Part shown: positions 43,180-63,344 of the stretch, piece after piece | How the letters are laid out: each line of letters begins with the position of its first letter | Numbering within the stretch: position 1 is the stretch's first letter | Assembly (NCBI GenBank): GCA_905178155.1 | Contig: CAJINV010000004.1 | Span: 5,477,711 to 5,541,710 of the forward strand | Source of the DNA: Amoebophrya sp. A120 | Taxonomy: Eukaryota; Protista; Dinoflagellata | Direction of reading: 5' to 3' | Length of the DNA stretch: 64,000 nt | Program-made: the position numbers and the translations under genes | The notes under the pieces: generated by a model | The model's input: the letters and a program-made list of their open reading frames with translations, nothing else | Database searches by the model: none | What the model was told of the DNA's origin: nothing

Positions 43180-45552
43180 CAATAGTATCTATTTTTCAGA
43201 CTCACTAAGGATTACACGCAAGAAATATATCGCAATCTTGAACGCAAAGAAAAGCGCAAGTTGCAGCGAATCGCGGCCGACGCAGGACCGATTCGAGGAG
43301 CTTGGCGTGAAAGAAATGAGGCCATAAACGAAATCCGTGAACTTATCGATAGTCAGCCCGAGTATGCTCATCTCAAAGAGCAACAGCGCCAGCGAATCGC
43401 CCAGGATTTGTTTAGTCAGGCTCAGATCGATCCCGAGGGGCCGATCGAGCAGGATGAAGAACTTAGCAACTTAGTTTATCCCTTTCTGTGTCCAGACTGG
43501 GAAAAGCATGAAGTAGCTTTTTGCTTCAAGGCTACCATCGCGTCAGCTTCTGTGAAAGATTCGGAAGTTGATAATCAGCCCGACTGGGTTGCAGCGATCG
43601 GTAAAGAAGTGCAAGCGCACTCGCACGTATTCCGAGCCGCCACCAGTGAAGAAATTCAAAACTGGATGGCTGAAGGCAATAGATTTATTCCTTGCCGCAT
43701 GATTCTCAGCGTGAAACGCGACCAGAGAAAGAAATGCCGGATCGTGTGCCTGGGTTACATGGGCTATGTTTCCAGCCACGAAGGAAAATTTGCAGAAGTG
43801 CCGGACCTATGCATTTTGCGTCTGCTTGTCGCAATCTGCTGCCAGAATCCGAATATCTGCATGCTGCCCGCGGATGCCCGCAATGCATTTTTGCAGTCGC
43901 GTTGCCCTGCTTTTGTTTTAGTAGCGTTAGACGAACGATTGCAGAAACAGCTCGGATATAAGTACGCCGTTGTTTTGTATGCCCTCAATGGCTTGCGCCT
44001 CTCGCCCGTTGCTTGGTCGAGACATCGCGACGAAAAGTTGCTGGAAGTAGGATGGGCTCGCAACCCATGCGAGCCAACGCTTTGGCATAAGCAGGATGTA
44101 ATCTTAATTGTCTTCGTTGACAATTTTTGGTTCTTCGGCCCGCGCGCCTCCTGTGAAAAAGCCAGGCAAGACCTAGAAGTGCCTCTTCGTCTGTTTCTTG
44201 AAGAAGTTAAAGAAACAGCTACGCGCCGTATCTATGACTTGCTCAGTATTGCGCTGCTGCAGGACAAAAATACTGGCGATATTACTTTATCCCAGGATGC
44301 GTACGTGACTAAGGCTTTAGAGCGGTTCGGCGGGAATATAAATGGGAAGCCAGCACTGAGCCCCATGTCAACCGCTCCAAACCCTTCGAACGAAGAGAAG
44401 CCCGCACTTTTAAAGTTAAAGCAGGAATACTGTGGCACTTTGAACTACCTTGCCACTAGCACGCGCCTTGACATCGTAGTAGCATTGAAATTCTGTGCAA
44501 AAGCAAAAGCGAACGAAGAAACGCTGACCGCGTTGAAGCGTATCTTTCGTTACTTGCGTACGCGCCGAGTTCTTGTCTACAGGAACAAGCAAGAAATCTT
44601 GAAAGGCAAGCTCACTCTAAGCGGTCTTTTGCTCCCTGTGTACTTTGAATCTGCCTCCAACAAGTCAAACGGATTGACAAAAGTTTGCGTTGGAGTAGAG
44701 CACACAGCATTTTGCCGCATGAATGGAATCACTGAAATGCAGTAAAAAACAACTATACTTTCAGGAACGTCGTAGCGGAAAACTGGATTTGAAGAATCTA
44801 ACTCCGATGGAGTTCCGGTCTGACGAAGACGGAACGCCGGAAAATTAAATTCCAAAACCCGAAGAGGAGAATGCACACCATCAAAAATTGGGTGATGTAG
44901 CTCCACGGGTATCAAGACCGTAAAAGCACGAGGAGAGCGGTGGATGTAGAGTCGATACGATTTGAACTGTAATCGTCTACCCTTATCTAGCATGCCACCG
45001 GGCTTCACTCGTAGCAACAAGTTCTTTCTTCTAAAAGTACACTGTCGATACACATTCTAGTACTATAATTTTGAAGAAAAGAAATCAATTGTAGATACAC
45101 GAAAAAAGAGTTTATCGCTCTGTTTCCATTTTCTGAAGGACATTCTATTGGACTAGGAGCCGGGGAGGTTATTGCGCGGTAATCGCCTAGTGCTCCAAGA
45201 TCCAATGTGAATGATCCAAGTATACGATGACACAGGATGGAAATCAGATGAGTGATCATGTGCATAAGATTACACCTAATCGTATGATGCACACAGAGAC
45301 AGTATAAGAAACTGTATGAGAAACTAAGTGGTTTGTAATGCATGTGATGCAACACAACCCTACAGAGACCAGCCTTAATGGCTAAAGAATAAGAAAATAA
45401 ATTTCCGTGACACACAAGCAAAGCTACCCACACAAGGTACCAAATAGGCATTACAGATTGTTCTACTTGGATCGTTTCTTGTTTGGGTCTTGGTCTTCGC
45501 ACGTTCACACTCCCCGAAGCCACACCTCCAACTCCGTAGCAATAGTATCTAT
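43150..45552. repeat. 43-bp direct repeat (43150-43192 and 45510-45552) bracketing the copia-containing insert
   Basis: ctccccgaagcc(g/a)cacctccaactccgtagcaatagtatctat, one mismatch. Confidence 0.95.
43261..44745 (+). pseudogene. Ty1/copia reverse transcriptase fragment (no gag, integrase, RNase H or LTRs seen)
   Basis: KCRIVCLGY, DARNAFLQ, ALNGLRLSPVAW, FVDN in place of YVDD, LSQDAY, TRLDI, LKRIFRYL. Confidence 0.88.
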
Positions 45553-45871: not shown

Positions 45872-48800
45872 GTAAGCCACGCCTCCTCACGCCTTGGTTT
45901 TGTTCGTGTGCAGTTCCACCATAAAAGTGCAATGCCATGAGCGAACGTCTTGAATGCTACATAGCATGCCGATAATTCTATATATGATACTTTGTATTTC
46001 TCCCCAACGGGATCTGTATGTAAAAGCAACATTTTATATTTTCAACCTTTCCGCTACGCAAAAATAAGGATCGACTACTGATGCACTCTTTTTGAAAAAT
46101 GAAACACGACCAGCACCAAGTGCATCATCTCCCGTGAAGACCAGCTTGAATGAAAAACTTCCGCACATGTTGCTTTTTGCAATGTAGTTTTGCACACGTC
46201 GATACTGAATAACAACAGATCTATGCAACAAACAGTCTTGTAACTATCCTTCTTTTATTTTCCCGTGCAACCAAAATTGTTTGACACCACGAAAGAGTGG
46301 CTAAGAGTGGTTCCGAAAAGTCGGAAACTACGAAAAAAAACAAAATTGCAACTTCTTTTGACTTCTATCTGTAATCACACCTTCTACTTAATGATGATGA
46401 TCTGTATTTGTATGTGGTATTGGCGGGCCTGATTAAAAAGCGTTACAACAGAAGCTATTTTCTTGTCTTTTTAATTACTTGACGGCATTCCTATCATGCT
46501 GTCATGACCACCTTCCCAGCGGCGCCGGCGAAGCTCGACTTAGAGTTTTCGTAGCGGTTCATGTCCGTTGGAAAGACCCAGCCAAAAAAAAGTGGGGCGA
46601 AAACGAAACCGCGCGTGAGTAGAAGTTTTTGCTTGTAAGAACTACAAGGTGTGCTCTTTTTACGAGTATGTTTAAGGCGGTTCCATTTTCCTTGTTCTGC
46701 TTCGGCAACGACAAAACAAGCGAGCTACTTCTGCGAGTACTCAAGAAAGCCTTTTGAGGACTTGGTAACTAGACTGAGGTGCCGCCCATGCTGTTTGGTC
46801 TGATGGGTGTTTACGCGCGTAAGCGGTCTCGACGAATTGGTTGGACATACTGTGTGGCTCAGCCGCACTCGTTGTCGTGTCGGTTTCGACCCTCACGCGG
46901 CGACAGCTGCCTGTCTGGCAACCTGTCACCGCCTCTTCGTGGCCTTCGCCACCGGTCGTTTGTGCTCGACCCTGCCTCCTTTCGCTGTGCGACTGGGGGT
47001 GGGTCTCGGGTACAAAACGACCGTCCCACCTCGGGGGAGAGGTCAACTTCTCTTGTCCTGGATGACAAAGTTACCACCTCTTGGTACACCATCGGTTCAT
47101 CTGCGATGAATCTGTGCCCGTCGGCACTGTGGCTGCGTCTTCGCGCCACGCTGCACCTCACGCAGCGCTGCACCTCACGCAGCACCGTCGCGTCGATGCG
47201 ACTTTGTGTCCCTCACGACACGCGTCTGTGGTGCGCGAGCACCCCTTCGCACCCAGTGCTGCCTCTGCAGCACGCGTTCTTACGCTGCCAGCTTCCCCGA
47301 GGGGAACCGAGCAACGTGCGGTTGGACACCGCAAGGCGTGTGTGTTATGCTCCACCGGTGTACAGGCTAGAAGACCTGTGCACGCGTCGGTGTCGGCACT
47401 CACACTTCATGCCTAGGGGGCGCTGCTCTGGCAGCTGCCGCGCCCCCGCCGCCTTGCACTTCCCCGTCTGGTCCAGATAGGGTTGTGTAAGTGCATAGGC
47501 CCGTGCGTCGTGCGACCTCGTAGGTGAGGGTCGGGCGCATGGGCCTCCCGCCCGCACATCCAAGTGCGGCGCGGGTGGCGTCGTGGGTCCAGCGCACCGC
47601 TCGTGCGCCTGCGATCCTGACGTCCTCCCGGGGGGCGCGCGTAGCGCTCCCCGTCCACCTCTCGTGCCACCCGTGGCACCGGCGTGTCCCTCCACTGTGA
47701 TGTGGGACGACACGCCGTCCTTCCCCCCTGCACTGCACGGTCGGGCAGCGGCGGCAACGCCTTGTTGCACTCGCACGACCCGCCCGTCCTGCCCTGCGCG
47801 ACCTGCGCGTCACGCAGGCGTGCTCGCGTGGTTGCACAACCGTGTGCACACGCTCTCGACCCTGCCTCGCACGCATGCCAGCGGGCATGCGCGCGATCGC
47901 CGGCCTGCGCGCGCACGTTGGCGCACATGCGTGTGCCAGTGCGCACGGCTCGGCACAGAGGCAGCTTCACTTGTTGGCGCGCGCACACGGTCGTGCCCGC
48001 CAGCATGAGTGCAGTTGTACGTGCGGGCTCCTGCGCCCGCACGGCCAGCTCACAGTACCGCACGCGCAGATCCCACCTGCACGTCCGCGTGCGAAGGCCT
48101 GTGTGCCTTTGCACGCGGTAAATCGAACCTGCCCCCTGGGGGTGCCGTGTGTGCACACATGCAGGTCACGGCGGCGGTGACGCCGTGTTGCAGCGAGCGG
48201 TGTCCCCCCTGGCACCACACGCCGCTCTCCCGCACTACAACGCAGTGACGGCTCGCCTGGAGCTGTGTTGCAGTGCCGCCCTGTATGGGCTGCCGGTTGT
48301 CGTTGGCTGCGAGCCACGACAATCGGCTCTCGCCCTGCTGGTGCCGTGCAAGGCACCAGCAGGCGGTGTTTCCCCTTGTTGCATAAGCAGGACAACACCA
48401 CCGACATGGACGTGACTGGCATCGTCGCATCACGCGCTGACGACCCTCGCGAACGACCTGCACCCGCCCACCGTGGACAGCGGACAGGTACAGTACTACG
48501 CTATTAGTTAATCATGCAGCAGGACGTGTTTCTTGAGTTAGCACACTAAGCCCGACGCATAAACCACAGCACAATCATCAGGTGACACCCGCTACCGCCA
48601 CTCGCCCGTGACCATCATCGACATGCACGCAGCCACGAACGAGATTTGCAGTCAAGACACCTTGTGTAAATCGCTCCCGAACTCACTTTGTACAGCAGCA
48701 CAGGAACTTATGCGCACTAGCTTACATCTGCCGCTTCAGCTAAGCACTCGCCTCAAGGTGTGCAGGATCTTGCAAGAGGAAAAGCTTGATGTTCGCTCTT

Positions 48801-49009
48801 CCGTTTTTCGCACTGAGATCACGATCACTTTTTTGACTTTTTGTTTGCTTTGCGCACCAGAAAGATCGCGATCTGTTCCATGCTACCACCAAGAGCACGT
48901 CGCGTGCCCGCGGTTTGGATCTCGCAGTGCAGCGTGCGCTGACAGCGATCACCCTGTCCGATGTTCTTCTACATTGTTAGCAGGATCGCCCCCTCTTTAG
49001 CATCAGAAA

Positions 49010-49270
49010 ATGCCGATTAAGGTGCACAGCGAGCACAACGCTGTAAGGATCGTGGAACTTACATGCCAGTCGACCCTATGCTGGGAAAGAATCGAAAGTG
49101 ATGCGTTACGGACCGCGCACGTGGTCGCAGGCCAGCGTGTCGCGATCACGTACTACCGAACCACAGGAGCGTTGTTGTTCCAGGGTGGTGCGGCGCAAAA
49201 TCATCTCTCCGAGACGGCCCAGGCCTTGATAGACACGCTCAAAAAGGCAATGCCGGCCGCCACGCTGTGA
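49010..49270 (+). CDS. Small element ORF with ITYYxTTGxLLxQG motif (resembles TBP-like / RNase HIII N-terminal fold)
   Basis: VAITYYRTTGALLFQG motif; ATG to TGA, 86 aa. Confidence 0.55.
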   Translation: MPIKVHSEHNAVRIVELTCQSTLCWERIESDALRTAHVVAGQRVAITYYRTTGALLFQGGAAQNHLSETAQALIDTLKKAMPAATL

Positions 49271-49356
49271 TCTTGTCCTTTTCTCGCTCGCTCGGCACAA
49301 TGAACAATCACCAGAAACATAGGAGAACTTGTGTAATGCCTTCTCATCAATTCAAG

Positions 49357-50207
49357 ATGGACTTGTACAGTATGGCCCAGCGGCAGTACATAGTGGAGCA
49401 CCACACCAGAACCGACACCAAGGAGAAGTGCGATCGGTTCATGAGCGACTTGCTCGACACCGAGTCTATCGAGGACTTCGTTGACGCCGCCGCAGAAGCT
49501 GCCCTGGGCCGAGAGTTCGGGAGCATGCCAGAAAGGTAATCTTACTGCCCTAGCCGCAAAAGAATACGGCGCGTTTGTGCGAAAAGCCCCCTCATTTGTG
49601 TGTTTTTTCAGCCCTTTCTGTGAAGCCATGTTGATGCTGTGCTCGGTATGCCAGGAAATTTTTAACAAGCAAATTGCCATTTATTTCTTGCTACAGGTAC
49701 ACTGCGAGTCGCCAAGCGAAGCGCAACAAGAAGTCGCCGGCGCGCTCTCCACCGTTGGCCCTGTGCAGCCAAAATTTGCGACGACTCGAGCAGCAAAATA
49801 CGGGCGAGAAACAGACTCTGCACAGAAATTCCGTCGTGGTGAGAGGACCCTCCGACAAGCCACATGCTGCCGCCCCCGAGCTAACCAGCGAGCAGAAGTG
49901 CGACTTACAGAATTGCGTCTCTGGCGCTGGCGGTTCTGGTTTTTATAACCAGCTCGACTTTGATGAGAAAGTGAATGCTTGGAGCGATCGATTTAATGAG
50001 CTCGCAGCGAGAAACTCCTTAGAGCTAGCAAGTGTGCCGCTAGAGCAGCTGAGCGAAGGCATCGAGAAGCGTGTTGCTCTGATGCATAAGGCAGGACACA
50101 GGCCCCGTTCTTGCAACATCGAATTGGATTACTTTGGTCAGTATCGCTTTGCAGTGCGGTACGACCAAGGCGAATATAGATTCCGCCCGGCGATCACCGA
50201 GGACTAA
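49357..50207 (+). CDS. Element accessory ORF, two exons (intron 49536-49696)
   Basis: ag|gtaat...ctacag|g joins MPER-YTAS in frame; start could be 49300. Confidence 0.65.
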
Positions 50208-50613
50208 GTAATTATAGGACTTTGTAATTGTGCAGTACGTCACTGCTGCCCCTTTTTTGTGATCCACTGCTCTCGCACCCTGTTCGCCCGCAGTTCCACA
50301 TTGATCAACCATGGGCCATGCGGCAACGCAGCAGCTTGCCATGCAGCCACACACCCAACAAGAAATAGATCTCATCGCGACGCAGCAGCTCGCAGAGAAC
50401 AAGTTCCGCGATGATCAAACAGCGGGATCAATGATCCAGCGACTCGGCAGGATCAAGCAGCAGGATCAAGCAACAGGATTGAGTCGGTTCTTTCTTTGTT
50501 GCTTGCGTTATTGCGTGCAGGCCCGAATTACACGTAATTCACCCACCAATTAGGCTGTTTATGACGGGAAGCAAACTACTATTCACAAACTCAAAGTTAA
50601 ATTATCAACAAAG

Positions 50614-53600
50614 ATGGCCAAAAACAAAAAAAAGACCGCGACACCCAAAGCCGGCGCCGCCGGCAGACGAAAAAACAGTATGGCGCTTTCTATAGCAATT
50701 TGCTGTTGCACGCTGATCAGCGCGCGCTTGTAGAAGGAAAAAATTGTTGTAAGCAATCTGTCCTGGAATATTGATTCGCCCCTACGATCAAGCCACTTGC
50801 GTCAGAAAAAATTATCAATCTCTTTCCTTCAGGTAAAGAAGATAAGCTGCAGCTACAAGAGGAGATCCGAGTAGACGAGCCAGCACCAGCGGACCAGAAG
50901 GCCGCGCACGACCCCCCTGCCACAACCCCCTTTGCCGAGCGCATGGCCGTATCGGACGAAGCAGCCGTGTACAGCGCCAAAATTCAGGAAAAAGCCGTGG
51001 ACTACGACAAATCTCAGGAAACAGCCGTGCACACCGATGCCGCTGCTACAAGCCAGCCTGCGACCGTCGAGAAGGAAACAGCCGTGCGCACCGTGGTCGA
51101 CACAGCCGTGCATCTGGCCCCCCTTCGCACCGACCCCCAACCCAACGACAAGGACGCCTTACCGCCATTAAGGAGAAGCCAGGAATTTCTGTACCAACAC
51201 CACCCGCAATTCCACGCCCCAGCGACAGGCAACATTTACAAATAGGGACGTAGTGCAGTGATTTGTGAGTGAGAGCTGTTTTTGTTTTTGGCGTGTCTTG
51301 TCCGCCCTGTGTTTGTGCTGTCCCGACTTAGTCTTGTCCACTACATCACGGCGTGTCGCGTCCGCCAGCTACCAACTGTTGTCGACGAACAACAGCTGAT
51401 GTGAGAAACAGTGTCAAGCAACAAATCTCGTTGTCGGTCCACAGAGCGCTTGCAACGGAGAATTAATTGACAGATACCCCGCTTCTCGCCCGAGACGCAC
51501 CTACGCCGTCGTCACCGAAGGTGACCAGCCTTCTCCATCTCGTACGCCCACCACCCGTATTTGACCTCCCGCTCCTGCCAAGACGCACTGTTCCAGGCAC
51601 CCCTCCGCGAACGAGCGTCGCCCTCGTGCCCCCCAAGGATCTGAGCCCAGACCCGCCATCTGAGTTCAGAATCACCGAATCCGAACTTAGCCACAGCGTT
51701 CAATTTGATCCAATGGACCACGCGATGCTACAGGAAGCGATCGACAGCGAGGACGCCATAGGTAAGGAGACCGAGGACAAGAAGACAGTGAGACTCCGCA
51801 TGAATCCCACTTCGCCGTCTACAGCTGGTATAAAAAATCGACTCTGTGTTAATCAAAATCGACTCTTGCATGCGAGCAAGGATGTATCGCATGGAATGAA
51901 ACCCGCCTTGCCTGTCATGCAATCCCCCCCCTCCCATGGTGGGCCCACGTGGCACCCTGCTACACGATGGTGTGATAATATCAAGCGCTTGGCTTTGCAG
52001 GTATCATAGATGAGCAGCCACCAGCTGAAACGCAAGAAACCGAGGCTGGCGTGCCCCCATTACCGCCTTCAGGCGACACCAAGAACAAGCTTCCCGCCCC
52101 GACAGAACCAGAGGCGCCGAAACAAACCACGACCATCGGACCGCACGATCGAGAAAGGATGGACAGCATAGTGAAGAAAATCAAAGCACAGCAGGAGGAG
52201 CGTGCGCGGGAGAGAGCCAAACAGCAACAAGCTGCTTCCTCTTCTCTCTTCGGTATCAAGAGCTCGTCGGTGCCATTTGATCAGTCGCATCCCCCGGTAC
52301 TAGGAAACTTCATCAACAGGGAAAAAACAGCTACGGCGCTCTTCCTCGGCCCGTCCCCAATCAAGAAATCTTCCTCGCCGCGCCGAGTCACCTCGACGCT
52401 CGCCGACTACAAGTTCGACCCATCACAACCGAGCATATTCGATCTGGGAAAACAAATCCGGAGCGACCAAGGAACAACTCGCAATCGATGCTCCTCGTTG
52501 GCGCCGCAGGACGACGAGTTCGACCTGTTCGGCAAACAGAGCAGCAACAAAAGCGACCACACAGCAAAGAACACAGCGACCAGCAGTACCTCCCAGCAAA
52601 AAGGCAAGGATGAGGAGGCCAAGCCAGCGACAAGCAAGGCCAATACCGAAAAGAAAACAACCGCTCGCAGCAAAAAGGCGGACACAGGAGAAAAAGCCAG
52701 CACAGGCAACAAGCGATCACGCAGCAAAAGCTCGGACCAAGAAGACGCGTCCAAAAAGTCCAGAGGACGGCCGAAGAAGCATGCGGCCCCCCCAGCGGAT
52801 AAACAGCCAGCAACATCCTCTGTCTTCGCACAACCCGCGGCAGCACTCCCACCGGTGCCGAAAGCGGAGGAGCGCACAACAGCGGAGGTACTCCCGCGAG
52901 GCATCCTGAAGAACGCCATTGCAGCCGACAGACCCACGATGCAACCCTTCAAGGTCCCGCCGTTGAAAATTGACCCAGTCGGTGATCGAAGCAAGCTCAA
53001 CAGGTTTCAGCTGGTCACAGCGCGTCTACGTCGACAGCCACCGCATGGACTACTGGGGCCGATTGCAAGAACGAGTACCAAAAGGAGCTGATGGCTACAG
53101 CATCACATTTAGCAGTGGACTCCCGTTCCAAGAAATAATGCGTCGATTCGAACTAGTACAAGTGCAACTTGACCGAGCACCATCGGCGTCGGCTCTCCGA
53201 GACCTGCAATCCAAATTGTTCATCAACGTCCACAAAGACAGGTGCCCAGCGTCCCTGGACGCTGGGGACTGGGGAGTAAGATGCTATCCGAAGAATGCGG
53301 GATTAGCACTTTTGACAGGAGCGACACGACGACCCGACTTCACCTATCCACAGCACCCAGGTGATGATGCACTTGGGCACGCGTTCACGAACAAGCATTG
53401 CAGTGACCGATACTGGAAAAGGTATATCCCCCCCCTCCCCTCTCTCTACTCTTTGTCTGTCATGCAGATCCGTGTCATGCGAATGCCACTAATGAGAGCA
53501 GACCTCTGAGCGCACATTATTGCAATATCAACCATCACACACTAATCACAGCGTGGTACGCGGCGACATACTGAGCGACGCAGTTTGCTTATCCGCCCCG

Positions 53601-56340
53601 GCGAGAGACCAGACGTCACTAACGCTAATGACGGTGATACCGAAAGACCTCAAACTCCCAGCCCACTCAGTACGATACGCCTGGTATCATGCAAAACGAG
53701 CAGGATGTGTCCCGAACTGGCTAGCAGAACACATAGAGGGACGCTTCGCGCGATATGCACAAGTGCCGATGCAAGGCGCCGTCATTGATGAACTCCACCA
53801 ATTTCCGGAAAGCCCCATGCAGTTGGAACCAACTTTGTACCTGATGTACCTCGACTGGCTGGAATTCTGCCGCATCATATGGCCGCTACACAAGGATCTC
53901 AACAGCCGGACGATGAGGGAGCACGCGAGGCACTTCCACAGGGCGGCCGTGCACCTGGGGCAGACCAACCGAAAAAGGTATTACCAGCCGAAGCATTGCA
54001 AGCCAGCAGGCGCTGAGTTCACAAAACAAAATGACCTGCTCCGGAAACTTCTGGTGGAGAATGACATGCAGGCCATGCAGCACTACGACGATCTCCATCC
54101 CATCCATCTGGACCAGCGCAAAGAAGTCCCCTTTGATCAGGTCGAAGCAACCACGTCCGAGGACGAGGACGAAGAGGATGATGGCGAGGAACTCTCGGAC
54201 GACTACATCGAAGCAGAAGAAACCAATGCCACCAGCGCAGCAGAATCTACTGCCCAATCCGAGAAAGAGGAGCCATCGGCGAAGAAACCGGTTAAGAAGC
54301 GTACATCAACAGCCGCGCGGTCCACATCTCAGCCTCGAAAAACCGCCGCTGCTACCACACGGCGCAAAAAGACGGACCCCCCGCAGGCCTCCTCGACCAC
54401 GGCAGCAGCAGTGCCCACCGTGTTAGAACAAACCACGGGTACGGCGCCCAACCGGCGACGCCGCGACAGCAGAGGCGACAGTCGCGGAAGACGACAACGC
54501 AGAAGAGACAGCAGAGGACGCGGAAGCAGAGCAACGGCTCCACACAGCAGACCAGTCCAACTAGCCGCCAACATCCTCCCATCTCATCGCACCTGCAGCC
54601 GATCTGTGTCGCCCGGCGACCCAGTCGATCGGTACAGGAGATCCTCCTTCTCGCCAGTACAAAGCACGACCTTGCTCCAGCAAACGAGTTCCAAAGGAGC
54701 TGGAAAAGGAGGAGGCGACCCATTCTCATTCACCAGGGATCGGCGACCAAGACAGCGACAACGATCACCCATAAGCATATCGTCGGCATCGCAGTCACCA
54801 GCCCAGTCCCCCAGTCGGCGCCGGCGTCACGATCGCAGCCGCCAACGACGGAACAATGAGCAGGATGATCAGGATCCGATCAGCCGCCTCATCACCGCGC
54901 TTACTGGTCGCGCCGAGTCAGCTACAGACTCGGCGCCAAGGGAGCGGTGCCGTCTCACCAACCGGAGATATTACAAAGAAGCAATCGGCATAAACTACGA
55001 CCACTACAACAACAAGACCCCGCACTTTGAAGCTGACTCCGCGCACTTCTACGTGACGGTGGGCAGTGTGACAGTGAAACTCAGCCCAGTACTGTTCTGC
55101 CACCTCATGCAAGTTGTCGACGGCCACCGCTCTTGGACCGCGGAAAAATATGCAAAGGTGAGCAACATATTCCACACATTGCACGAAGGCTCCTCTCTCA
55201 TTTCCGGAGACGACAACGATGAGCGGATTCAGAAACAAGCACTAGTAGCAATCGCGACGAATCAACCGGCCCTCGACGTGCCCTACACGCGCGCACAAGC
55301 GAAAACGAAGGTAGAAGACATGTGGACTGCCCCGATTATCGGCGCCCAGCACAAAGACCAGATGATCAGCATCCTCGTCGCCCTGTCTCTCCGACAAGCG
55401 GTCAGCGGTGCTGGACTACAACCATCGTTCTTCGGCGTCACGTATGAACTCCTCTCCACGGCCAAAAAGGAGTTCCAGGCAGCAGTGCAAGCAAGCGGCT
55501 ATCTCAACGTCTCAAGTAACTGGACAAGAAGTCGCAGATGAGCCGACATTGAAGAAAACGTTAAAAGACTTCAGTGTCGCCTCGATTGTACTGCTAACGC
55601 CTTACGTGTTCAAGCTCTGGAACCAGGATTACGAGCAATGCCACCGCATGCGGGCGTCAATCTGCAAAATTCCCAAAGCGGGGACCTGGGTGAAGATCAA
55701 CCCGGTGGTCGCATTTCACGAGGTCATCAACTTCTTGCTGCTAGAGAACCCATCGAGCAAGCCGTCCCCGGCGCAATATGTGAAGTCGTTGCAACACCTA
55801 CACATTCATTGCGGCACGGGCCACGCAGGCGGCGTCCCCCCGTCCTTCACCTCGGATTTCTCCTTCGGTACATCAGTGAGCAACACCGCAGCAGCGTCTA
55901 CTACAACAACAAAAGCTGCTACGACTACGACCACAACCACCACGGCTAAAACTAAAGCGGAGCGGCTGCGGGAGCAGAAAGCCAAGAAACAAGCCAAGAA
56001 AAAGGCGGAACAGGAGAAGAAGAAATCGTTTAAAGAACGAGGCGAAGCTCGAGCCAGCACTTTTCATGAAATTGAGAATCAGGTTATCTGTCAAATAGCT
56101 GATAGTTTTGATGGACCAGATCCAAAAGTACGGCTGCGCCAACCTGGCGTGTGCATATGCGATGTAGCTAGAGAAATGGGCTTGACACGCACAACCAAGG
56201 ATGGCAGCGAGCAGTTGACTCAATGTCGACCCAAATCTAAGCACGTCAAGGGCAAAGGCAAAGTCGCAGTTTCTCGACCATGCGAGTCACGACATAAAGA
56301 AACCAAAAAGATTGCTGCTCTGTACAAGGTGAAGGCGTAA
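50614..56340 (+). CDS. Long gag-like/low-complexity element protein region (four introns, two +1 junctions), Cys/His cluster at C-terminus
   Basis: Introns 50678-50832, 51229-51473 (GC-AG), 51828-52000 and 53422-53551 all restore frame; +1 junctions near 53.0 and 55.5 kb. May be 2-3 separate genes. Confidence 0.6.
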
Positions 56341-56661
56341 ATACCCCATCAGAACACAATATCGCCAGCGTCTTCGCGCGCAGCACAGTTGTTTGCAACC
56401 TCCGCCATTGGCTGTGGCTTTTTGTACAAAGACAAAGTAAGCAAGTGTTCCCAGCATTCAATCGCGTGTCGTGGTCATTCGGAAAATGCAGCTCTGTTAC
56501 ACGTTCGTCATCGGATCCACGAGCCCAGATCTCGTTGCACCTGTGTCGAAGCGCCAACAGTTGCAAAATAGCAGCAGCAACTCGCCATTTACGCTAGTAC
56601 TTTACCCCAAAAGCAAATGAAAATGCCACGCCTCGCCCTCTCGTGTCTCGCTGCAGTCACC

Positions 56662-59124
56662 ATGTCGCTTCTTGCCCCGACCCCGGAGGAAGTCATCGCA
56701 GACTTAGCCAAATACGCCGCGCCGTCCGATCAGGTATAAGTACAGCGCTCATGTTGGTAATCGGAAGACCTACTATGCATATCTCAGCCCCCTTCATAGG
56801 CAACGCATACTACCACCCACCACAGGAAAAACTGGAAAGGGTGGAGCGCCTCCAGATGGCCCTGGAAGACGTCCGCAGCAACTCGGTGCGACCCGAGCAA
56901 CAGGATCTCCTCGCGCAATATGAAGCAGAGCGGGCCAAGGTGCCTCATTTGCAAGCACTACACGAATTCTACGCGCGGGATCGGCCAGACATATGCAAGA
57001 CCAAAACATATGTCAAGCAGCCTCTCATGTGGTGGAACCTCGCCAAACGCCACGACTACCTCCAGCACGCCATCACGATCAACAAAGTAGTACTCGATCA
57101 GCTGGCGCCGCCCGGTCCGGAAGACGAACCACCGCTCGAAACGATGGCAGATCGGGTATATGGTCCCAAAGGTTACCTCAGCACGGGATTTCCGCACCGC
57201 GGACCGATTGAGCTATACAAAATCTGGCACAGAGCCAAGGACATGACCCCCGACGAGACCGTCCGCTACCTAAATTGCCCCACCACGCAGGAAGCAACTG
57301 ACGACGCCCTTGCCAAGCTCAATTTCACAAGGACAACTCCGCACACCTTCGAGACGCCGGAGATGCTCCAGCGCGGCTGGGACGAGCTCCAAGGCAACAT
57401 ATTCAACCCAGACGACCCGAACTCTGCCCCTGTTCTCATGCGAGCCGATGCAACACCGGAGCAGATGCTAGGGAAAACAGTCATCCCCATATTCCACATC
57501 GGCCAAAGATGGGACCACGAGAAGCAGCACTTCTCCAAGATAAGAGGAATCGCCAACGAAAAACACGCGAACAAAGTGGCGTCGGCCTACGGAGAACACA
57601 TGACGATGCCCCACCTCCCAGTCTGCATTGAGAGATGCCGCGCATGCCTCTGCCCTGGACGGGCCCCGCCCCTGGTCGAACTCAAGAAGCACCTCAGGGA
57701 ACAATTGGAGCAGGAAAGAAAGCGATCCGGCAACTGGCAGGATTGGAAGATGGTGGACGTCAACATCAAAGGGCGCACCAAGCGAGTAGGTGGCTTCACG
57801 CCATTCATCAGCAAAATTGACAAATGGCAGGCATATTTCCAACTCCCCAATAACAAACCCAGCGAATACTACATGGCAGCGTGGAACCCAAAGGAACAAC
57901 GCTACAAATTCTTCATCAACAACGCCATGTCCTTCGGCAATCTCCATTCGGTATACCATTACTGCGGAGCAGTCAGCGGCTACGTGGAAACAATGATAGA
58001 GCGATGCCTCGGCATCAGCTGCCTGCGCTATGTGGACGACGTCATCCTGTTCACCCCTGAATGGATGGCCCCAGCAGCGCGCCAGGCAGTCAAGCAGTTT
58101 CTCGGCCTCCTCGGACTCGCATCGGCCGACAGGAAAGACATCATAGCGCAACGGAATGTGCCCACCGATGTGCTAGGCGTCGACGCCACCAGCTCCGCCG
58201 ACGACGTCTCATTCGCAATGGCACCAGAAAAAGTCGCCAAAGCAGTGACCACAGTCACACGGATGCAGAGCGCGATCCTCGACAGATCGTGTGCCCTCCT
58301 CGACGTACAGCAAGCACTAGGAGTCACCTGCAGTCACATCTTCGCCAGAAGATGCCTAGACCACAGCCCCGCTGTGCGCCTACTAGCCAAGTACACAGCC
58401 CCGCGAGTCATCTCCAACCTCATCACGCAGGGCACCGATTCGCACGTGCTAGCAGTAGCAGCCATGGTTGAAGAGGCGAAGCAAGCTATCAAGGAAAATA
58501 AGCCGCTATCTCTTGCGGCGCGCCTGAATGGAGCCGCGACTGTAGAAATCTTCACTGATGCAGCAGCAGAAGGCAACGATGTATATGTTGGGGGAGTCAT
58601 CTTCACAGCCGACGAGCCAGTCCCTCTCTGTTTCTCGTACCACTTCACGCATGGCCCGAACGGGCCTCCAGGCAGCACCCAGCTTCCAGTTGGGCTTGCT
58701 ACGTGACGAGAAGATTTTTGTGTACGAACTGCTTGCAGTCTATCTCGCAGGAGAGTTCTGGCAAAACTACATCCGACACGCGAGAGGAATCAGCCACATC
58801 GACAATTGTGGCTCGGCATACGCTATCATTCGCGGAGCATCATCGGCTGTCGCCGGGTCAGTCCTGTCTTCGATGATCGCTCAACTATGGAGGGGGCTGG
58901 AATTTACTCCAGTCATTCACTACATCAACACAAAGCGCAATCCAGCGGACGCGCTGACGCGACTATCTCTGATGCAAGCATTCTTTAAGCTAACATCCGC
59001 CGATAACAGGTCCGCTGAATATGGTGAATTACTCAGGCAAGCGATCGACAATGCCGCTACTCGCATCCAAAACTTCAAGCTCAAGTACGAGGAAGCCCTC
59101 GTCAGCAAATCCACCACGGGCTAA
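56662..59124 (+). CDS. pol: Reverse transcriptase + DIRS1-type RNase H
   Basis: KIDKWQAYFQL, AMSFG, YVDD (58029-58040), VLGV; RNase H FTDAA, YELLAV, HIDN, NPADALTR. Intron 56734-56825; +1 shift inside RNase H near 58.65-58.70 kb. Confidence 0.9.
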
Positions 59125-59185
59125 AAACATAGCAAGGGACCCCGATGCACGCCTCGAGTATCAAGACCAGCTCTGGGTGTGGCCG

Positions 59186-60183
59186 ATGGAGGCGAGCTTT
59201 CCCCATCAATCTGTCAAGCAGCGGGAAGCTCATTGGACGTCGTTCGTTAGCTGGTGGAATTCATTAACCACCACCAAACCCAGCGACCGAATCTACATCC
59301 CGAAATACGGCGAACCGATGACGCACCTCCAGTGCCCCACGTTCACCTACCTGCGAGAAATTTACAGCGTCTCGGAGTTCCTCATCGAGATGGACATGAG
59401 CCGAAGCCAGGCAAATTACACCTGCGCGGTCATCTCCAGACTAAAGCAAATAGGTGCTTTTTCTTTCTTTTCGTGGCACCTTGCGTCGCTATGTGTCTTG
59501 CATCATTCGACAACTCGTGATCAAACGCATCCTCTGAATCAACAACAGGCAAAATGGAAGTCACTGACAACATGAAGCTGCTCACCAACTCCGTCAATCG
59601 GCTACGGGAGCAATTCTCTGCCGCAAAAGCCAAACCGGTGACAGCGGCCAGGGTGAAACTACTCAACCAAATAGACAAGAACATTGCACGCTTCTGGGTT
59701 TGCTCCGGACTGCGAGCTGCCTCAATGCAGTCAATCGACATCGTCAAGCCCAACACAGACGACCCAAAGTGGGCGACCGCGTTGGTGACAACCAAGTGCA
59801 GCTCAACGGTATCGCAGGTCCAATTTCCCTCCTACGTCCCAGCGAGACTCAGCGGCATGTCACTCCCCTACACCGCCGCCAAGCTAGCGCTAGCGGCCAA
59901 ACACGCAGGAACCACAGGACATGGCCCCAGAAGAACGCTTGCGTTAGTGGTACGCAAGGCAGTGGCACGTTGCAACATCAAAGAGCTCAATCAAGTTCCA
60001 AATGAGACACAAAAGCGCATTTCTCTCCATTTTGATTGGAGCAGCAACAACTGGATGACCAGTTTTCGTGGGTACACACTCGACTACAAGGATCATCTAG
60101 ACGCACCACTATTTGTGGCCAAAGAAGCCTTCAATTATCTCACAGAAGAACTTCACCAACCGATCGACAAAGATGAATATTGA
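59186..60183 (+). CDS. Tyrosine recombinase, two exons (intron 59454-59548)
   Basis: Catalytic set SGLR, TTK, HGPRR, W, FRGY. atag|gtgctt...caacag|gc joins KQIG-KMEV in frame. The frame is open from 59021. Confidence 0.82.
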
Positions 60184-60339
60184 TGGAAAAGAATTTTTTC
60201 AAAAACAAAGAGGTCAGTTTCTGTCGAACAGCGCCGACTTCGAGCGCGCTTTGCTTTTTCTTCCAAAAAAAAAATGCTCTGTCTTGTTCTTGAGCAGGGA
60301 CCACAGCACAGCGACACATCATAGGACCACGTAGTAGCC

Positions 60340-61063
60340 ATGTTGCCCTTTAAGAAGGAAAGCAGTCCGATGACGCCAGAAGAGTTCTCTCAGGATTTTG
60401 AAAAGAGTGCCGCCATCTTCTTTTACAACTACGTCTCCATGCAGAAAATAATCTCACATGATGCGTTTGTTTGTGTCCAGGCGCAGAGCGATAAATTATG
60501 GAGAGACTCGTATCGCGAGGCTATCTCTGCGTGCAAAGATGAGAAATTGAAGAAAGCACTCAATGAGCGCGCCAGCAAGATATTCCTCCGGAAATGCCTG
60601 TCCGAAGAGGAGTGCCTCGACACCACGCTTGCGCGGCTCTCCGCGTCCCGTGCCCGCTACGACGATCAGGCGACCAAGCCCGACCGGCTCCCTCTACCCC
60701 TGGACCGACGGCCGGGAAGCCGTTGACTTCATTCTCTTCTGCGACGACCGTGAATCTGCCCCCTCGCCCTCGACGCCCGCGTCTTCATCCTCCTCCTCGA
60801 AGACAACTATCGGGACCAGCGATGACACCAAGAAACAGGACACCGAGAAGAAGTATTCTTATTTTTTCTTAGGTCTTGGCCTGTTGTTGCCTGTGTTTTG
60901 GTATGCGCGCAGTCACATGCGATGCATTCGATCAGCTCAAACTCGAAACACAGGTAATTTGGCGCCCGCCCGATCACCACCGGTACCAACGGCACAACAC
61001 ACACCACAAGCACCCACCCCACACAAAAAAGGTATAGTCTCTCCCTATTTTGTGATGTCTTAG
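60340..61063 (+). CDS. Post-recombinase accessory ORF(s) with +1 junction near 60.7 kb
   Basis: ORFs 60340..60726 and 60563..61063 overlap; helical, coding-like composition. Confidence 0.5.
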
Positions 61064-61443
61064 TGATGATGCAGAACTTCACTTCTAGTTCCATGCCCCC
61101 CTCCATAACCATGCATAAGCGAAAGAACACTACAGGTGCCGACACACCGACCTACCGTGTAGTAGAACACTGCGTGTCGCCATGGTGCCTGGCAGCTGTG
61201 CCACCGGTGGAGGAAGATGTAATCGGTCGTCTCCTGGAGGATGCCAAAAAACGACTGCAGTGCACGCGAGATCTACTGAAAGAACATGCGTCGAGACTCA
61301 GCAACACTGACTCGCGCGCGCTAGTAGAAGACTTTCTCGCGATCACAACGGAAATGCGCTACTTTTTAGACCTCGCTGACCACGTCTCTCTCGTGATCCA
61401 AAAGCGACAAACCCGGACCTCAGCCTGTATGTTGTGTTTCTGA
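61063..61443 (+). CDS. Post-recombinase accessory ORF, predicted helical
   Basis: 126-aa ORF with amphipathic pattern (RLLEDAKKRLQ...ALVEDFLAITTEMRYFLDL). Confidence 0.5.
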   Translation: MMMQNFTSSSMPPSITMHKRKNTTGADTPTYRVVEHCVSPWCLAAVPPVEEDVIGRLLEDAKKRLQCTRDLLKEHASRLSNTDSRALVEDFLAITTEMRYFLDLADHVSLVIQKRQTRTSACMLCF

Positions 61444-63344
61444 AAGTGCCGTATTGCGAACTGCCGTCAAACACGGCTCAGGTAGAAGAACCTCAGACAG
61501 ACAAATCAAGCTGCTCTGTTTCTGAATTCCAAGAAATATTATCGTGGGATGAGTCCCATCGTCCAGATTCTTTTCAAAAAATATATATTTCTTCGATCGA
61601 GTACCCATTTCTCTCCCTGCATCTGATTTGAGCGATTCCTTCTAGTCTCGATCTCCATCAAATTCGAATGATGATTCGTTTCATTCTGATCCGCAGATGA
61701 GTGATGCAATTCAACATCGGTTGAAGGCACACACGCTTACCCAAATGAATGAAACCGCATGCAGCAAACCATGCGTCCCGGACGATTCCGTGGCCCCACA
61801 GTTACCACAGTGTTCTGAAAGTATGGCACTACCATAGCCCCGCAAAGGCATCACAACTGGCGGGAGGGCGGGCCTCAGGCAGCACGATTGGGAGTATAGT
61901 CTAGCTCACATCAGAGCCGAAGGCTATGTGTGCTCTAGGGGTGAGGCCCACTGCCCGCCCCGCCACTTCTGAAGGACGCTCGCGGTGCGTTTCAGCGTTC
62001 GGGTGTGTGCTCGCGCACCACCAAACGGCGACCTTGCCCCCCTTCGGGGGCGGGGGCCGCTGTAGGCACCCATCGGTCCGTGAACGGACGAAGACCATAC
62101 AGTATGGGCATTGGCACCTGCATAATAGTTAAGATACTAAAAACAAAGTGGGGGCGCCACTAGAATCCATCGCGGTGTTTCTTGTCCTTTTTGTGAGTAT
62201 TTATCGCAGAAAGGAAGCCCCCGGGTCGTGTATTTGCTTTGCCACTGCATTTTTGACAATTCTGCCCGATTACTTTTACTGCCACAAGTTCTGCACGACT
62301 GCGCCGGAGAAATAGATTGTAGCGATCCGCACTACGATTATAGTGAGTTCCGGCCAGCTTGTCGGTGATGTGTATTTTTCGCTGACAGCCAGGAGAGATG
62401 ATTCTAGAAGTAGAAGCAAACACCTGATTGTCAGTAGGAATACCAGAACAGCTGGCTGTGCAGCAGTCCTGACTAATTGAAATGAGTTTTATTGAGCAGC
62501 AATAATATGATTATAAGATATCCAGGTTGAATAAAACGAGAATACAGTAGGCGAGAAGTCAAGCTTTTGAAAAGTTTTTTTGGGTTTCCAATATTTTGGG
62601 CGAGCAAGAATTGCAGTTCATTGTGTGGTTCGCTGCTGACAACAGTCTATTTTTACTGAGAATAATTATTCTGTTATTTAAGCAAAAAATATTTCTGTAG
62701 CAGCAATGTTAGTTTTTTCGAGGAGTAAGAAACGCAAAGGTGTACAAAGGTTATTCAAAAACAGTGCATTTGATGTACTTGTGGAAATGAAATAATCGCA
62801 TGACTAGGCCGATTTCCACAGGTACACTCTAGAAGTGCACGTTCTTGGGAACGAGGAAAAATACGTAGGACATTACAACGCAGTATGTCGATACAACAGA
62901 AAAAAGAGAAAACTCAGACACGTACGATAAGGTAATTTTACGACGCATTGAATGCCGTATCTTTCCAATTTAAAACTTATGTGTTTTATCTGGATGTGGG
63001 CGAGCAGACGAGTCCTGCATTTGGTTGAGGCGAGGTACTGAAAGAACTGATCAGGACAAGGAGAATAAAGTCATTTGTTTTGATATCACACGCGGAAAAA
63101 CAAAACAACCTGCGTGGCGGTGTCTCGAAAAACATCGTATAGAAAACTTGTTGGCCGGGGCCCGTGCGCGAGCAACTCAACGAGGACCTGCACTCAATCA
63201 CGTCGAAGAGGTCCTATTTTCGTGTTCAGTACAAGGGAAAAAAATCACGTGATTCTATTGCCCAAAATTGCACGACTTCAGCCCGCTCCGAGCGGATACG
63301 GCCGTAGAGTAGAATCATGCAAGTGAGTTGTACGGAAATCTGTC

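Follow-up and report, generated by a model that had tools for sequence, protein, structure and literature searches.

Retrotransposons with a gene for a tyrosine recombinase (YR) are the least understood order of retroelements, and their integration chemistry and the roles of their repeat layouts are largely models. One of their groups, Ngaro, was reportedly defined by Goodwin and Poulter in 2004. DIRS elements combine inverted terminal repeats (ITRs) with an internal complementary region (ICR) and a methyltransferase (PMC3783388; PMC6681497), and DIRS-1 has a length of 4.8 kb (PMC7192593). Ngaro elements have the layout A1-[ORFs]-B1A2B2 (ORF, open reading frame), and in Cafeteria they measure ~6 kb and isolated AB repeats were also seen (PMC8547959). 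The genome paper of the dinoflagellate parasite Amoebophrya sp. A120 reported LTR (long terminal repeat) as well as non-LTR elements, left most repeats unclassified and never used the word recombinase (PMC7789003). Here we describe an element of 15.4 kb on a 64,000-nt stretch of this genome (the window; contig C4, positions 5477711-5541710). The copy at window positions 46751-62131 is most likely an old, inactivated YR retrotransposon of the order DIRS in the broad sense, with the family architecture of Ngaro-like elements, i.e. split direct repeats. All of its genes are located on the + strand and encode a two-exon gag-like gene, followed by a reverse transcriptase (RT)-RNase H (RH) gene and an overlapping two-exon, Cre-like recombinase. 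Positions below are window coordinates, and copies were searched for in the 115.5-Mb assembly.

The class of this element (DIRS/Ngaro-type) is already known, and the element is not categorically new; new are its lineage, its size, its introns and its set of natural recombination products. A preliminary description of the window had judged its size far above the usual, which is borne out by 15.4 kb as compared to DIRS-1 and the Cafeteria Ngaros, and had suggested that it may be an undescribed lineage. The latter is supported by the strong divergence of RT and YR and by the literature we searched, which contained no account of such a large intron-bearing YR element from Amoebophrya and none that brings Amoebophrya and DIRS together for such elements, but does not extend to the class.

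Gene content and coding constraint

The element is present in three full copies, on C4 (the window copy), C12 and C1. The C12 and C1 copies are 92–96% identical to the window copy, with 96% identity in the RT region, where we also recovered one relative with 67% identity. This relative is single-copy, located on another contig (C2, ~9865766-9883272), spans 17.5 kb and has intact RT-RH and YR frames.

The RT (YVDD), RNase H and recombinase (R-K-HxxR-W-Y) named in the preliminary description were all confirmed by motifs and predicted folds. The ORF at 56598-58703 carries YVDD at 58029-58040 and matches Pfam RVT_1 with an E value of 5.8e-6, which is under the gathering cut-off; this weak match was the only one obtained with Pfam for all larger ORFs, and none of the ORFs matched rve or a protease. 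RNase H, for which Pfam finds nothing, is represented by the motifs TDA (58551-58565), E (58720-58737), DN (58795-58812) and NPADALTR (58939-58962). A HMMER scan of 1.84 billion representative proteins returned 131 RT matches, the best being 28–31% identical, which were mostly gene models of Amoebophrya AT5.2 (including the top match) and marine metagenome proteins. The alignment consensus of these RT-RH relatives reads YIDD, TDA, E, DN and N.AD..TR. For the C2 relative, whose RT-RH ORF is intact, we modelled this ORF with AlphaFold using an alignment of 66 of the 131 matched sequences (predicted local distance difference test score 88.5). Residues 1-555 of the model align with HIV-1 p66 through the RNase H (Z 16, ~400 residues), and the model also matches the RTs of cauliflower mosaic virus, Moloney murine leukemia virus and Ty3 (Foldseek E 1e-14 to 1e-10) and that of foamy virus. 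The ORF stops ~30 disordered residues past the RNase H, and a methyltransferase had no Pfam match at E ≤ 1. The 759-aa RT-RH frame, which is intact in the C12 copy, had no match in a homologous-protein search and nothing relevant in a PDB sequence search. Several AT5.2 gene models contain a YR-homologous region 3' of the RT, and >1100 residues upstream of it; the order of RT/RH and then YR is therefore a trait of the lineage. Comparisons of ORF A and ORF B (the two exons described below) and of the 5' and 3' ORFs with the 131 RT matches by phmmer and blastp yielded nothing, and Rfam and tRNA scans of the element detected no ribozyme or tRNA-like feature.

The overlap of the RT-RH and YR frames and the YR start codon (59021) are conserved in C2. 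YR ORFs of YR retrotransposons are often frameshifted or overlapping (PMC3783388; PMC6681497). The catalytic residues are encoded at 59704-59724 (R), 59788-59799 (K), 59920-59934 (HGPRR), 60028-60042 (W) and 60067-60087 (Y), and eight paralogous ORFs have W..TGLR..S, a hairpin K, HxPRRT, HFGW and xYTxDY in common. Seven paralogous ORFs and the two window exon ORFs had no YR match at E ≤ 1 in Pfam, including Phage_integrase (PF00589), and a PDB sequence search with a YR profile found nothing relevant. The model of the 371-aa YR ORF of C2 matches both domains of Cre (225 residues, Z 11.3) and also the lambda, XerH, P2 and HP1 integrases, with its catalytic domain at 3.3–3.5 Å from the P2, HP1 and lambda cores.

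Upstream of the RT, the two exons ORF A and ORF B are assumed to be gag-like, a label taken from position and composition only. Of the ~5.7-kb gag-like region previously delimited, only ~4.4 kb, namely ORF A and ORF B with an intron between them, is supported as coding. Both exons are intact in the C1 copy (508 and 946 aa, respectively). The C-terminal part of ORF A is 29% identical to C2, the N- and C-terminal parts of ORF B are 24% identical, and ORF B had no usable match in the ESM Atlas. Proteins were compared as single exons and as natural ORFs of the other copies, and junction codons were judged by eye. The two introns of the element are supported because the C2 relative has uninterrupted ORFs of matching length: its ORF A and ORF B form one 1098-aa frame, which is collinear without gaps if 53422-53551 is skipped, and skipping 59454-59548 gives the same 20-residue spacing of conserved RL motifs as in its single YR ORF. 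An introner origin of both introns was rejected, as each is found only in the three element copies genome-wide.

The element had been described as a multi-gene unit, but the window copy is degenerate and its frames are broken. Private 4-bp insertions are located near 52989, 55476, 58694 and 60688 (the last at ~60685-60688), independent read contigs show forms without them, and the C12 and C1 copies have indels of their own. Among five candidate programmed '+1 shifts' between ORFs, four were rejected as private 4-bp insertions that are absent from the other copies. The RT-RH and YR frames have a conserved overlap, and the shift inside the YR is an intron. Copy-specific insertions of C12 are found at window-equivalent positions 53108, 54939 and 61625 (4 bp) and 58831 (5 bp). 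Of nine indels, seven follow the pattern XYZ-N-XYZ, in which one extra base separates the two halves of a 3-nt direct repeat (CAG-G-CAG, GCT-T-GCT, CTC-C-CTC), and most 4-bp insertions are not exact 4-bp tandem duplications. They resemble footprints left by the excision of elements with 3–4-nt duplications; introner elements of A120 have 3–5-nt direct repeats (PMC7789003).

In ORF A, ORF B, RT, RNase H and YR, an excess of the differences between the three copies falls on third codon positions, and all five are under purifying selection. This signal is strong in YR exon 2, with 26 synonymous to 11 non-synonymous differences from C1. No third-position bias was detected in 60250-62131 and in most of 47500-51400, and protein similarity to C2 is limited to 52967-60180. 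The extent of this similarity and the coding constraint therefore define a supported core of ~8.2 kb, and ~5.2 kb on its 5' side and ~2 kb on its 3' side are lineage-specific. Extra ORFs on both sides were part of the preliminary description, which had named single-copy host genes as an alternative for the upstream ones. Every copy contains the upstream ORFs, which are therefore not host genes. The ~5.2 kb upstream and ~2 kb downstream lack coding support. When the upstream ORFs (49102-52986) were compared with C2 by relaxed tblastn, only noise was obtained, and the 3' ORFs 60325-61060 and 60958-61440 have no third-position bias, no C2 homologue and no Pfam match. The near-invariant region at 46751-47500 is probably cis-acting; a 235-codon open frame in it (46773-47477) has no coding support and no Pfam match. 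The first 750 nt are also 92–93% identical in truncated fragments of the element, in sharp contrast to the next 1.3 kb. A GC-rich palindrome is located at 47884-47937. In the C1 copy, an ~800-bp insertion with terminal inverted repeats (TCACCCGGACAGATCCCGGGCGG...) follows window-equivalent 48636-48645 (L006/L005) in the hypervariable region and is like a miniature inverted-repeat transposable element (MITE) or an introner-like DNA element. A second insertion in C1, of 1727 bp after window-equivalent 56769, has CTAC(T) on both sides; its reading as 'open in all frames' was rejected, as it is 85% N.

The large size could alternatively reflect a composite of an ordinary ~8–9-kb core (gag-like, RT/RH, YR) and unrelated 5' and 3' DNA, i.e. 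cargo or junk. The restriction of protein similarity to 52967-60180, the hypervariable or replaced segment at 47650-49000 and the missing coding signal in 60250-62131 agree with such an origin, as does the 3' end of the C1 copy. Its last 1.4 kb (window-equivalent 60700-62131) is 11–14% diverged and the remainder 3–4%, and C1 is therefore a mosaic copy, implying recombination between sub-lineages. We nevertheless consider a composite highly improbable: the three full copies, a 2.3-kb derivative and solo units of the terminal repeats (see below) share the outer ends, C2 is equally large, and AT5.2 models also extend >1100 residues upstream of the RT. It is, moreover, compatible with an inactivated Ngaro-like retrotransposon rather than opposed to it.

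Termini, copies and target sites

Alignment of 20 kb around each copy showed that homology of the C12 and C1 copies to the window extends from 46751/46752 to 62131, with none beyond, and the end bases of the copies are identical. Of the boundaries in the preliminary description (46766-62131), the left ITR at 46766 and the right end stand, but homology starts 15 nt earlier; the start of the element is 8–15 nt to the left of that placement. The left end reads [C/A]TTTT[G/T]A-GGACTTGG-TAACTAG... and the right end ...GCATAATAGTTA. Local alignment of the left end (36 nt) with the reverse complement of the right end (40 nt) has a score of 35 as compared to 15.5 ± 2.1 for shuffles (z ~9), and with a 17-nt gap the alignment grows to ~61 nt of the left and ~75 nt of the right end (score 45, shuffles 20.6 ± 3.7). 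The previously described imperfect ITRs of ~65–80 bp are thus real, and they are the outer ends of two repeats, A and B.

The arrangement of these repeats is complete in the C2 relative. Its A1 (C2 3766-3904) and A2 (20652-20790) are 99.3% identical and its B1 (20403-20653) and B2 (21022-21272) 99.6%, B1 adjoins A2 at a TT common to both, A2 and B2 are 231 bp apart, and TT is found at both outer junctions. Ngaro, PAT and VIPER elements have this same A1-[ORFs]-B1A2B2 layout. In C2, too, A and B form inverted repeats with their outer ends (score 27 as compared to 15.4 ± 2.4), and the right termini of both families are alike. In the window family, the full copy on C1 is followed head-to-tail by one A-x-B unit with the junction ...TAGTTA/GGACTTGG/TAACTA..., in which the inverted arms surround an 8-nt spacer in a lox/FRT-like layout. 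Split direct repeats are hence present in C2, in C1 (with a diverged A2) and in the deleted derivative L014, and absent from the window and C12 copies, which are 'full-only' forms (A-interior-B without a trailing A-B).

In the window copy, neither terminus nor the junction had a match in the interior in either orientation (Smith-Waterman scores within the shuffle range, nothing with blastn-short); this copy therefore has no ICR and no split repeats. The combination of RT, RNase H and YR with ITRs had been taken as DIRS-type, which proved to be the wrong subgroup. A DIRS1-type element, in which ITRs and ICR rebuild the ends and which would represent a giant new DIRS1-like lineage, shares with our element the real inverted termini, the presence of RT, RNase H and YR and the lack of a target site duplication. 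It is very improbable, however, given interior scores within the shuffle range, no methyltransferase, a recombinase that comes after RT/RH and the split direct repeats of the C2 relative and the C1 copy.

In addition to the full copies (n = 3), the window family comprises the deleted derivative L014 (n = 1, 2.3 kb, full + A-x-B layout), A-x-B or 'solo' units (n = 5), a diverged A-x-B unit (L018, n = 1) with 79–88% identity to the window ends over short segments, and 5'-only fragments (n = 3, 1.0–1.25 kb). The solo units of ~618 bp consist of 163 nt of the left end (87% identity), ~215 nt of other sequence and 240 nt of the right end (95–97%). They occupy different loci, have mutual identities of 95–99.5% and are a mobile, non-autonomous partner of the element. 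Two of them, L011 (C20:1049148-1050165) and L012 (C6:3947862-3948879), are 99.5% identical with unrelated flanks. Their likeness suggests recent mobilisation, though all three full-length copies are broken.

Nearly all of the 11 left flanks end with TTTTTA, the exceptions being the window (TTTTGA), L015 (GGATTTA) and L018 (TTTTTC). The solo unit on C6 and the C1 array are inserted at the same position of an abundant repeat (2642 first-look candidates), each in a different copy of it. This repeat (L012:819-1018 on C6; L019-L026) has a 3' end that reads ...CTTCCAGACCCAGACATTTTTGCAGTTGATA. Empty paralogous sites (n = 8) read CAGACATTTTTGCAGTTGATA (also ...ATTTTTGCAGTTGATA), and occupied copies read ...CAGACATTTTTA[element...AGTTA]CAGTTGATA, with TTTTTA at the left and AGTTA-CAGTTGATA at the right junction. 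Insertion therefore occurred without target duplication, as had been noted from the window and as is now evident from the flank comparison and the eight empty repeat copies, and the crossover was in or beside TT(A/G). Insertions are at TTTTT-R sites with a TTA core at both junctions (TT in the C2 family). For DIRS, the sites of integration are set by a trinucleotide found where the circle is joined (PMC7192593), and our data fit this published idea of a short junction core.

Two of the 5'-only fragments, L015 (C12:2771101-2781100) and L016 (C20:994001-1004000), both on the reverse strand, comprise only the left end and 1.0–1.25 kb. Their left junctions are canonical and their right junctions are at variable interior points, and their flanks contain exact duplications of the upstream target of 61 and 38 bp, respectively, both ending at the ...TTTA crossover core. 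They possibly represent abortive, one-ended integration. The third fragment, L017 (C5), has no duplication.

Table 1. Features of the element copy in the window
Feature	Position	Strand	Evidence and remarks
T-rich target half-site and crossover core	46751..46757	+	CTTTTGA here, TTTTTA at nearly all other insertions; 11 left junctions
Near-invariant 5' region	46751..47500	+	1–10 variable sites per 300 nt; probably cis-acting
8-nt spacer GGACTTGG	46758..46765	+	between right and left inverted arms in head-to-tail (circle-type) junction
Repeat A, left terminal module	46758..46913	+	~87% identical to 618-bp solo A-x-B units
Left inverted-repeat arm, imperfect	46766..46826	+	alignment score over shuffles
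Hypervariable segment	47650..49000	+	~35% of sites vary; largely replaced compared to C12/C1 copies
Gag-like exon 'ORF A'	51979..53421	+	broken by private 4-bp insertion near 52986-52989
Intron 1	53422..53551	+	130 nt, GT..AG (AG/GTA...CACAG/C), kept in 3/3 copies
Gag-like exon 'ORF B'	53552..56337	+	K/R/S-rich, no known domain; private 4-bp insertion near 55473-55476
RT-RH gene	56598..59121	+	motifs, fold; frame broken by private 4-bp insertion near 58691-58694
YR exon 1 (N-terminal DNA-binding domain)	59021..59453	+	ATG conserved with C2; overlaps RT-RH frame end
Intron 2	59454..59548	+	95 nt, GT..AG (AG/GTGCTT...AACAG/G), kept in 3/3 copies
YR exon 2 (catalytic domain with R, K, HxxR, W and Y)	59549..60183	+	motifs, fold
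3' region	60184..61891	+	ORFs 60325-61060 and 60958-61440 unsupported
Repeat B, right terminal module	61892..62131	+	95–97% identical to solo A-x-B units
Right inverted arm	~62057-62131	+	ends ...GCATAATAGTTA

Outside the element, a 494-codon ORF at 43261-44745 (+) matches Pfam RVT_2 (Copia-type RT, E 6e-9). It is located 2 kb upstream, and the element therefore adjoins another retrotransposon remnant. The window ORF 38764-39591 encodes a CCCH zinc finger.

Putative mode of propagation

We propose that the full-length unspliced transcript would be the genome of the element, while the gag-like protein and the recombinase would be translated from spliced forms, and RT/RNase H would make the cDNA. 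In the canonical 'full + solo' form, A1-interior-B1-A2-x-B2, terminal redundancy would rebuild the ends and close the circle at a B/A junction. The recombinase would bind the inverted arms and recombine this junction with the T-rich target via a 2–3-nt core. A circle with two B/A junctions could be resolved by the recombinase into two circles, one full-only and one solo A-x-B, which would explain the full copies without a trailing A-B (window, C12) and the dispersed 618-bp units. The window copy would be a dead end because it has no terminal redundancy and four frame-breaking insertions. To the observed parts, junction, target and selection, this scheme adds an RNA genome, a circle and two-junction resolution by the recombinase, which we infer. 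The RNA intermediate has indirect support in the purifying selection on RT/RH.

Several observations weigh against a Ngaro-like element (a label that refers to architecture) that propagates through RNA. DIRS and Ngaro recombinases are reportedly detectable by Pfam Phage_integrase (PMC3783388), which does not detect this one. Three RNA-seq runs labelled with this organism gave zero reads on 56132-62131, which is uninformative about an RNA or circular intermediate. The trailing A2 of the window family (C1) is only 87% identical to A1, and the C1 array may therefore have arisen when a full element inserted next to a solo unit already in place, and not as a replication product. At the target, the base is G in 8/8 empty copies and A at both junctions of occupied sites, which needs heteroduplex repair or rare A-bearing targets. 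Finally, both introns are kept in all copies, which fits unspliced genomic RNA and equally movement at the DNA level.

The main rival explanation is such DNA-level movement. The YR of a Crypton-like element or lox-site cassette would excise and reinsert double-stranded DNA circles, and the RT would be a passenger or have another role. Besides the introns in every copy, this would accommodate the 618-bp derivatives, which have retained only the ends, as MITEs do, and seem to have moved recently (99.5% identity) while the three full copies are broken, as well as the lox-like junction, the lack of an ICR and, for two of the three full copies, the lack of terminal redundancy. Retention of introns, however, is known in retroelements that package unspliced RNA. 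RT and RNase H, moreover, are under purifying selection between copies and are intact in C2, the genes and the arrangement of the repeats are the same as in Ngaro-type retrotransposons, and the 99.3–99.6% identities of A1/A2 and B1/B2 in C2 are expected if these repeats are regenerated with each retrotransposition. We consider propagation at the DNA level improbable, and a Crypton, i.e. a YR DNA transposon without RT, was rejected, as RT/RH is present and under selection.

A more speculative reading, to which we give some but limited credence, combines both modes in a Syndiniales-specific YR lineage with a dual lifestyle. Units of 15–17.5 kb would replicate via unspliced, intron-bearing RNA, the YR would resolve 'full + solo' circles at lox-like B/A junctions and mobilise 618-bp A-x-B cassettes at the DNA level, and abortive integrations would leave 5' fragments with 38–61-bp duplications. 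If true, this lineage would be a working hybrid of a retrotransposon and a site-specific DNA cassette system.

The family provides unusually clean natural evidence on YR retrotransposons: empty and occupied sites, a lox-like head-to-tail junction, a strict T5 target, copies in full-only, in solo-only and in full + solo form, and apparent abortive integrations. Retroelement genes of Amoebophrya can keep spliceosomal introns through propagation, which bears on the interplay of introns and transposons in a genome famous for introner invasions. YR retrotransposons are also an added class of elements that is unmentioned in the A120 genome paper (PMC7789003).

Comparison with known systems

The Amoebophrya elements resemble Ngaro elements in the order of gag-like gene, RT/RNase H and YR, in having no methyltransferase and no target site duplication, in the A1-[ORFs]-B1A2B2 layout of C2 and C1, and in the isolated AB units scattered in the genome. 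In contrast to the Ngaro elements of Cafeteria burkhardae (~6 kb), they measure 15.4–17.5 kb, their gag-like and YR genes contain spliceosomal introns, their gag-like product has ~1,400 residues, and a spacer 'x' of 215–231 bp separates A2 from B2. Their YR is undetected by Pfam PF00589 and their RNase H by Pfam, two of the three full copies have no A2-B2, and the solo units are a diverged, mobile lineage of their own.

With DIRS-1 they share RT/RH and YR, inverted termini that meet at the circle junction, a junction core matching the target and an overlapping YR frame. They differ in having neither ICR nor methyltransferase, in the location of the YR downstream of RT/RH and in being three times larger. 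The inverted repeats of DIRS-1 measure several hundred bp, as compared to arms of ~40–75 nt in Amoebophrya.

VIPER of kinetoplastids has with SIRE a short non-autonomous partner that shares its ends. Split direct repeats are a common feature of VIPER (PMC6681497), PAT and the Amoebophrya elements. The gene order of VIPER, however, is gag, YR, RT/RH, whereas the YR follows RT/RH in Amoebophrya, and PAT-like elements have a methyltransferase that is absent here. Apart from the domain folds, their sequences show no similarity to the Amoebophrya elements. SymbioDIRS-Dnmt3 of Symbiodinium (PMC5890265) is likewise a dinoflagellate YR retrotransposon, with the layout A-coding-B-A-B and an RT too divergent for Pfam seed alignments, but contains a cytosine methyltransferase inside pol, which the Amoebophrya element lacks, and a YR that is recognised as Phage_integrase.

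Cre/loxP and FLP/FRT are comparable in the fold match over both Cre domains, in a Trp at the third 'His' position as in Cre and in the substrate-like junction with inverted arms around an 8-nt spacer. In contrast to these systems, the Amoebophrya arms are imperfect and multipartite, and the target shares only the T-rich run and the 2–3-nt core with the junction.

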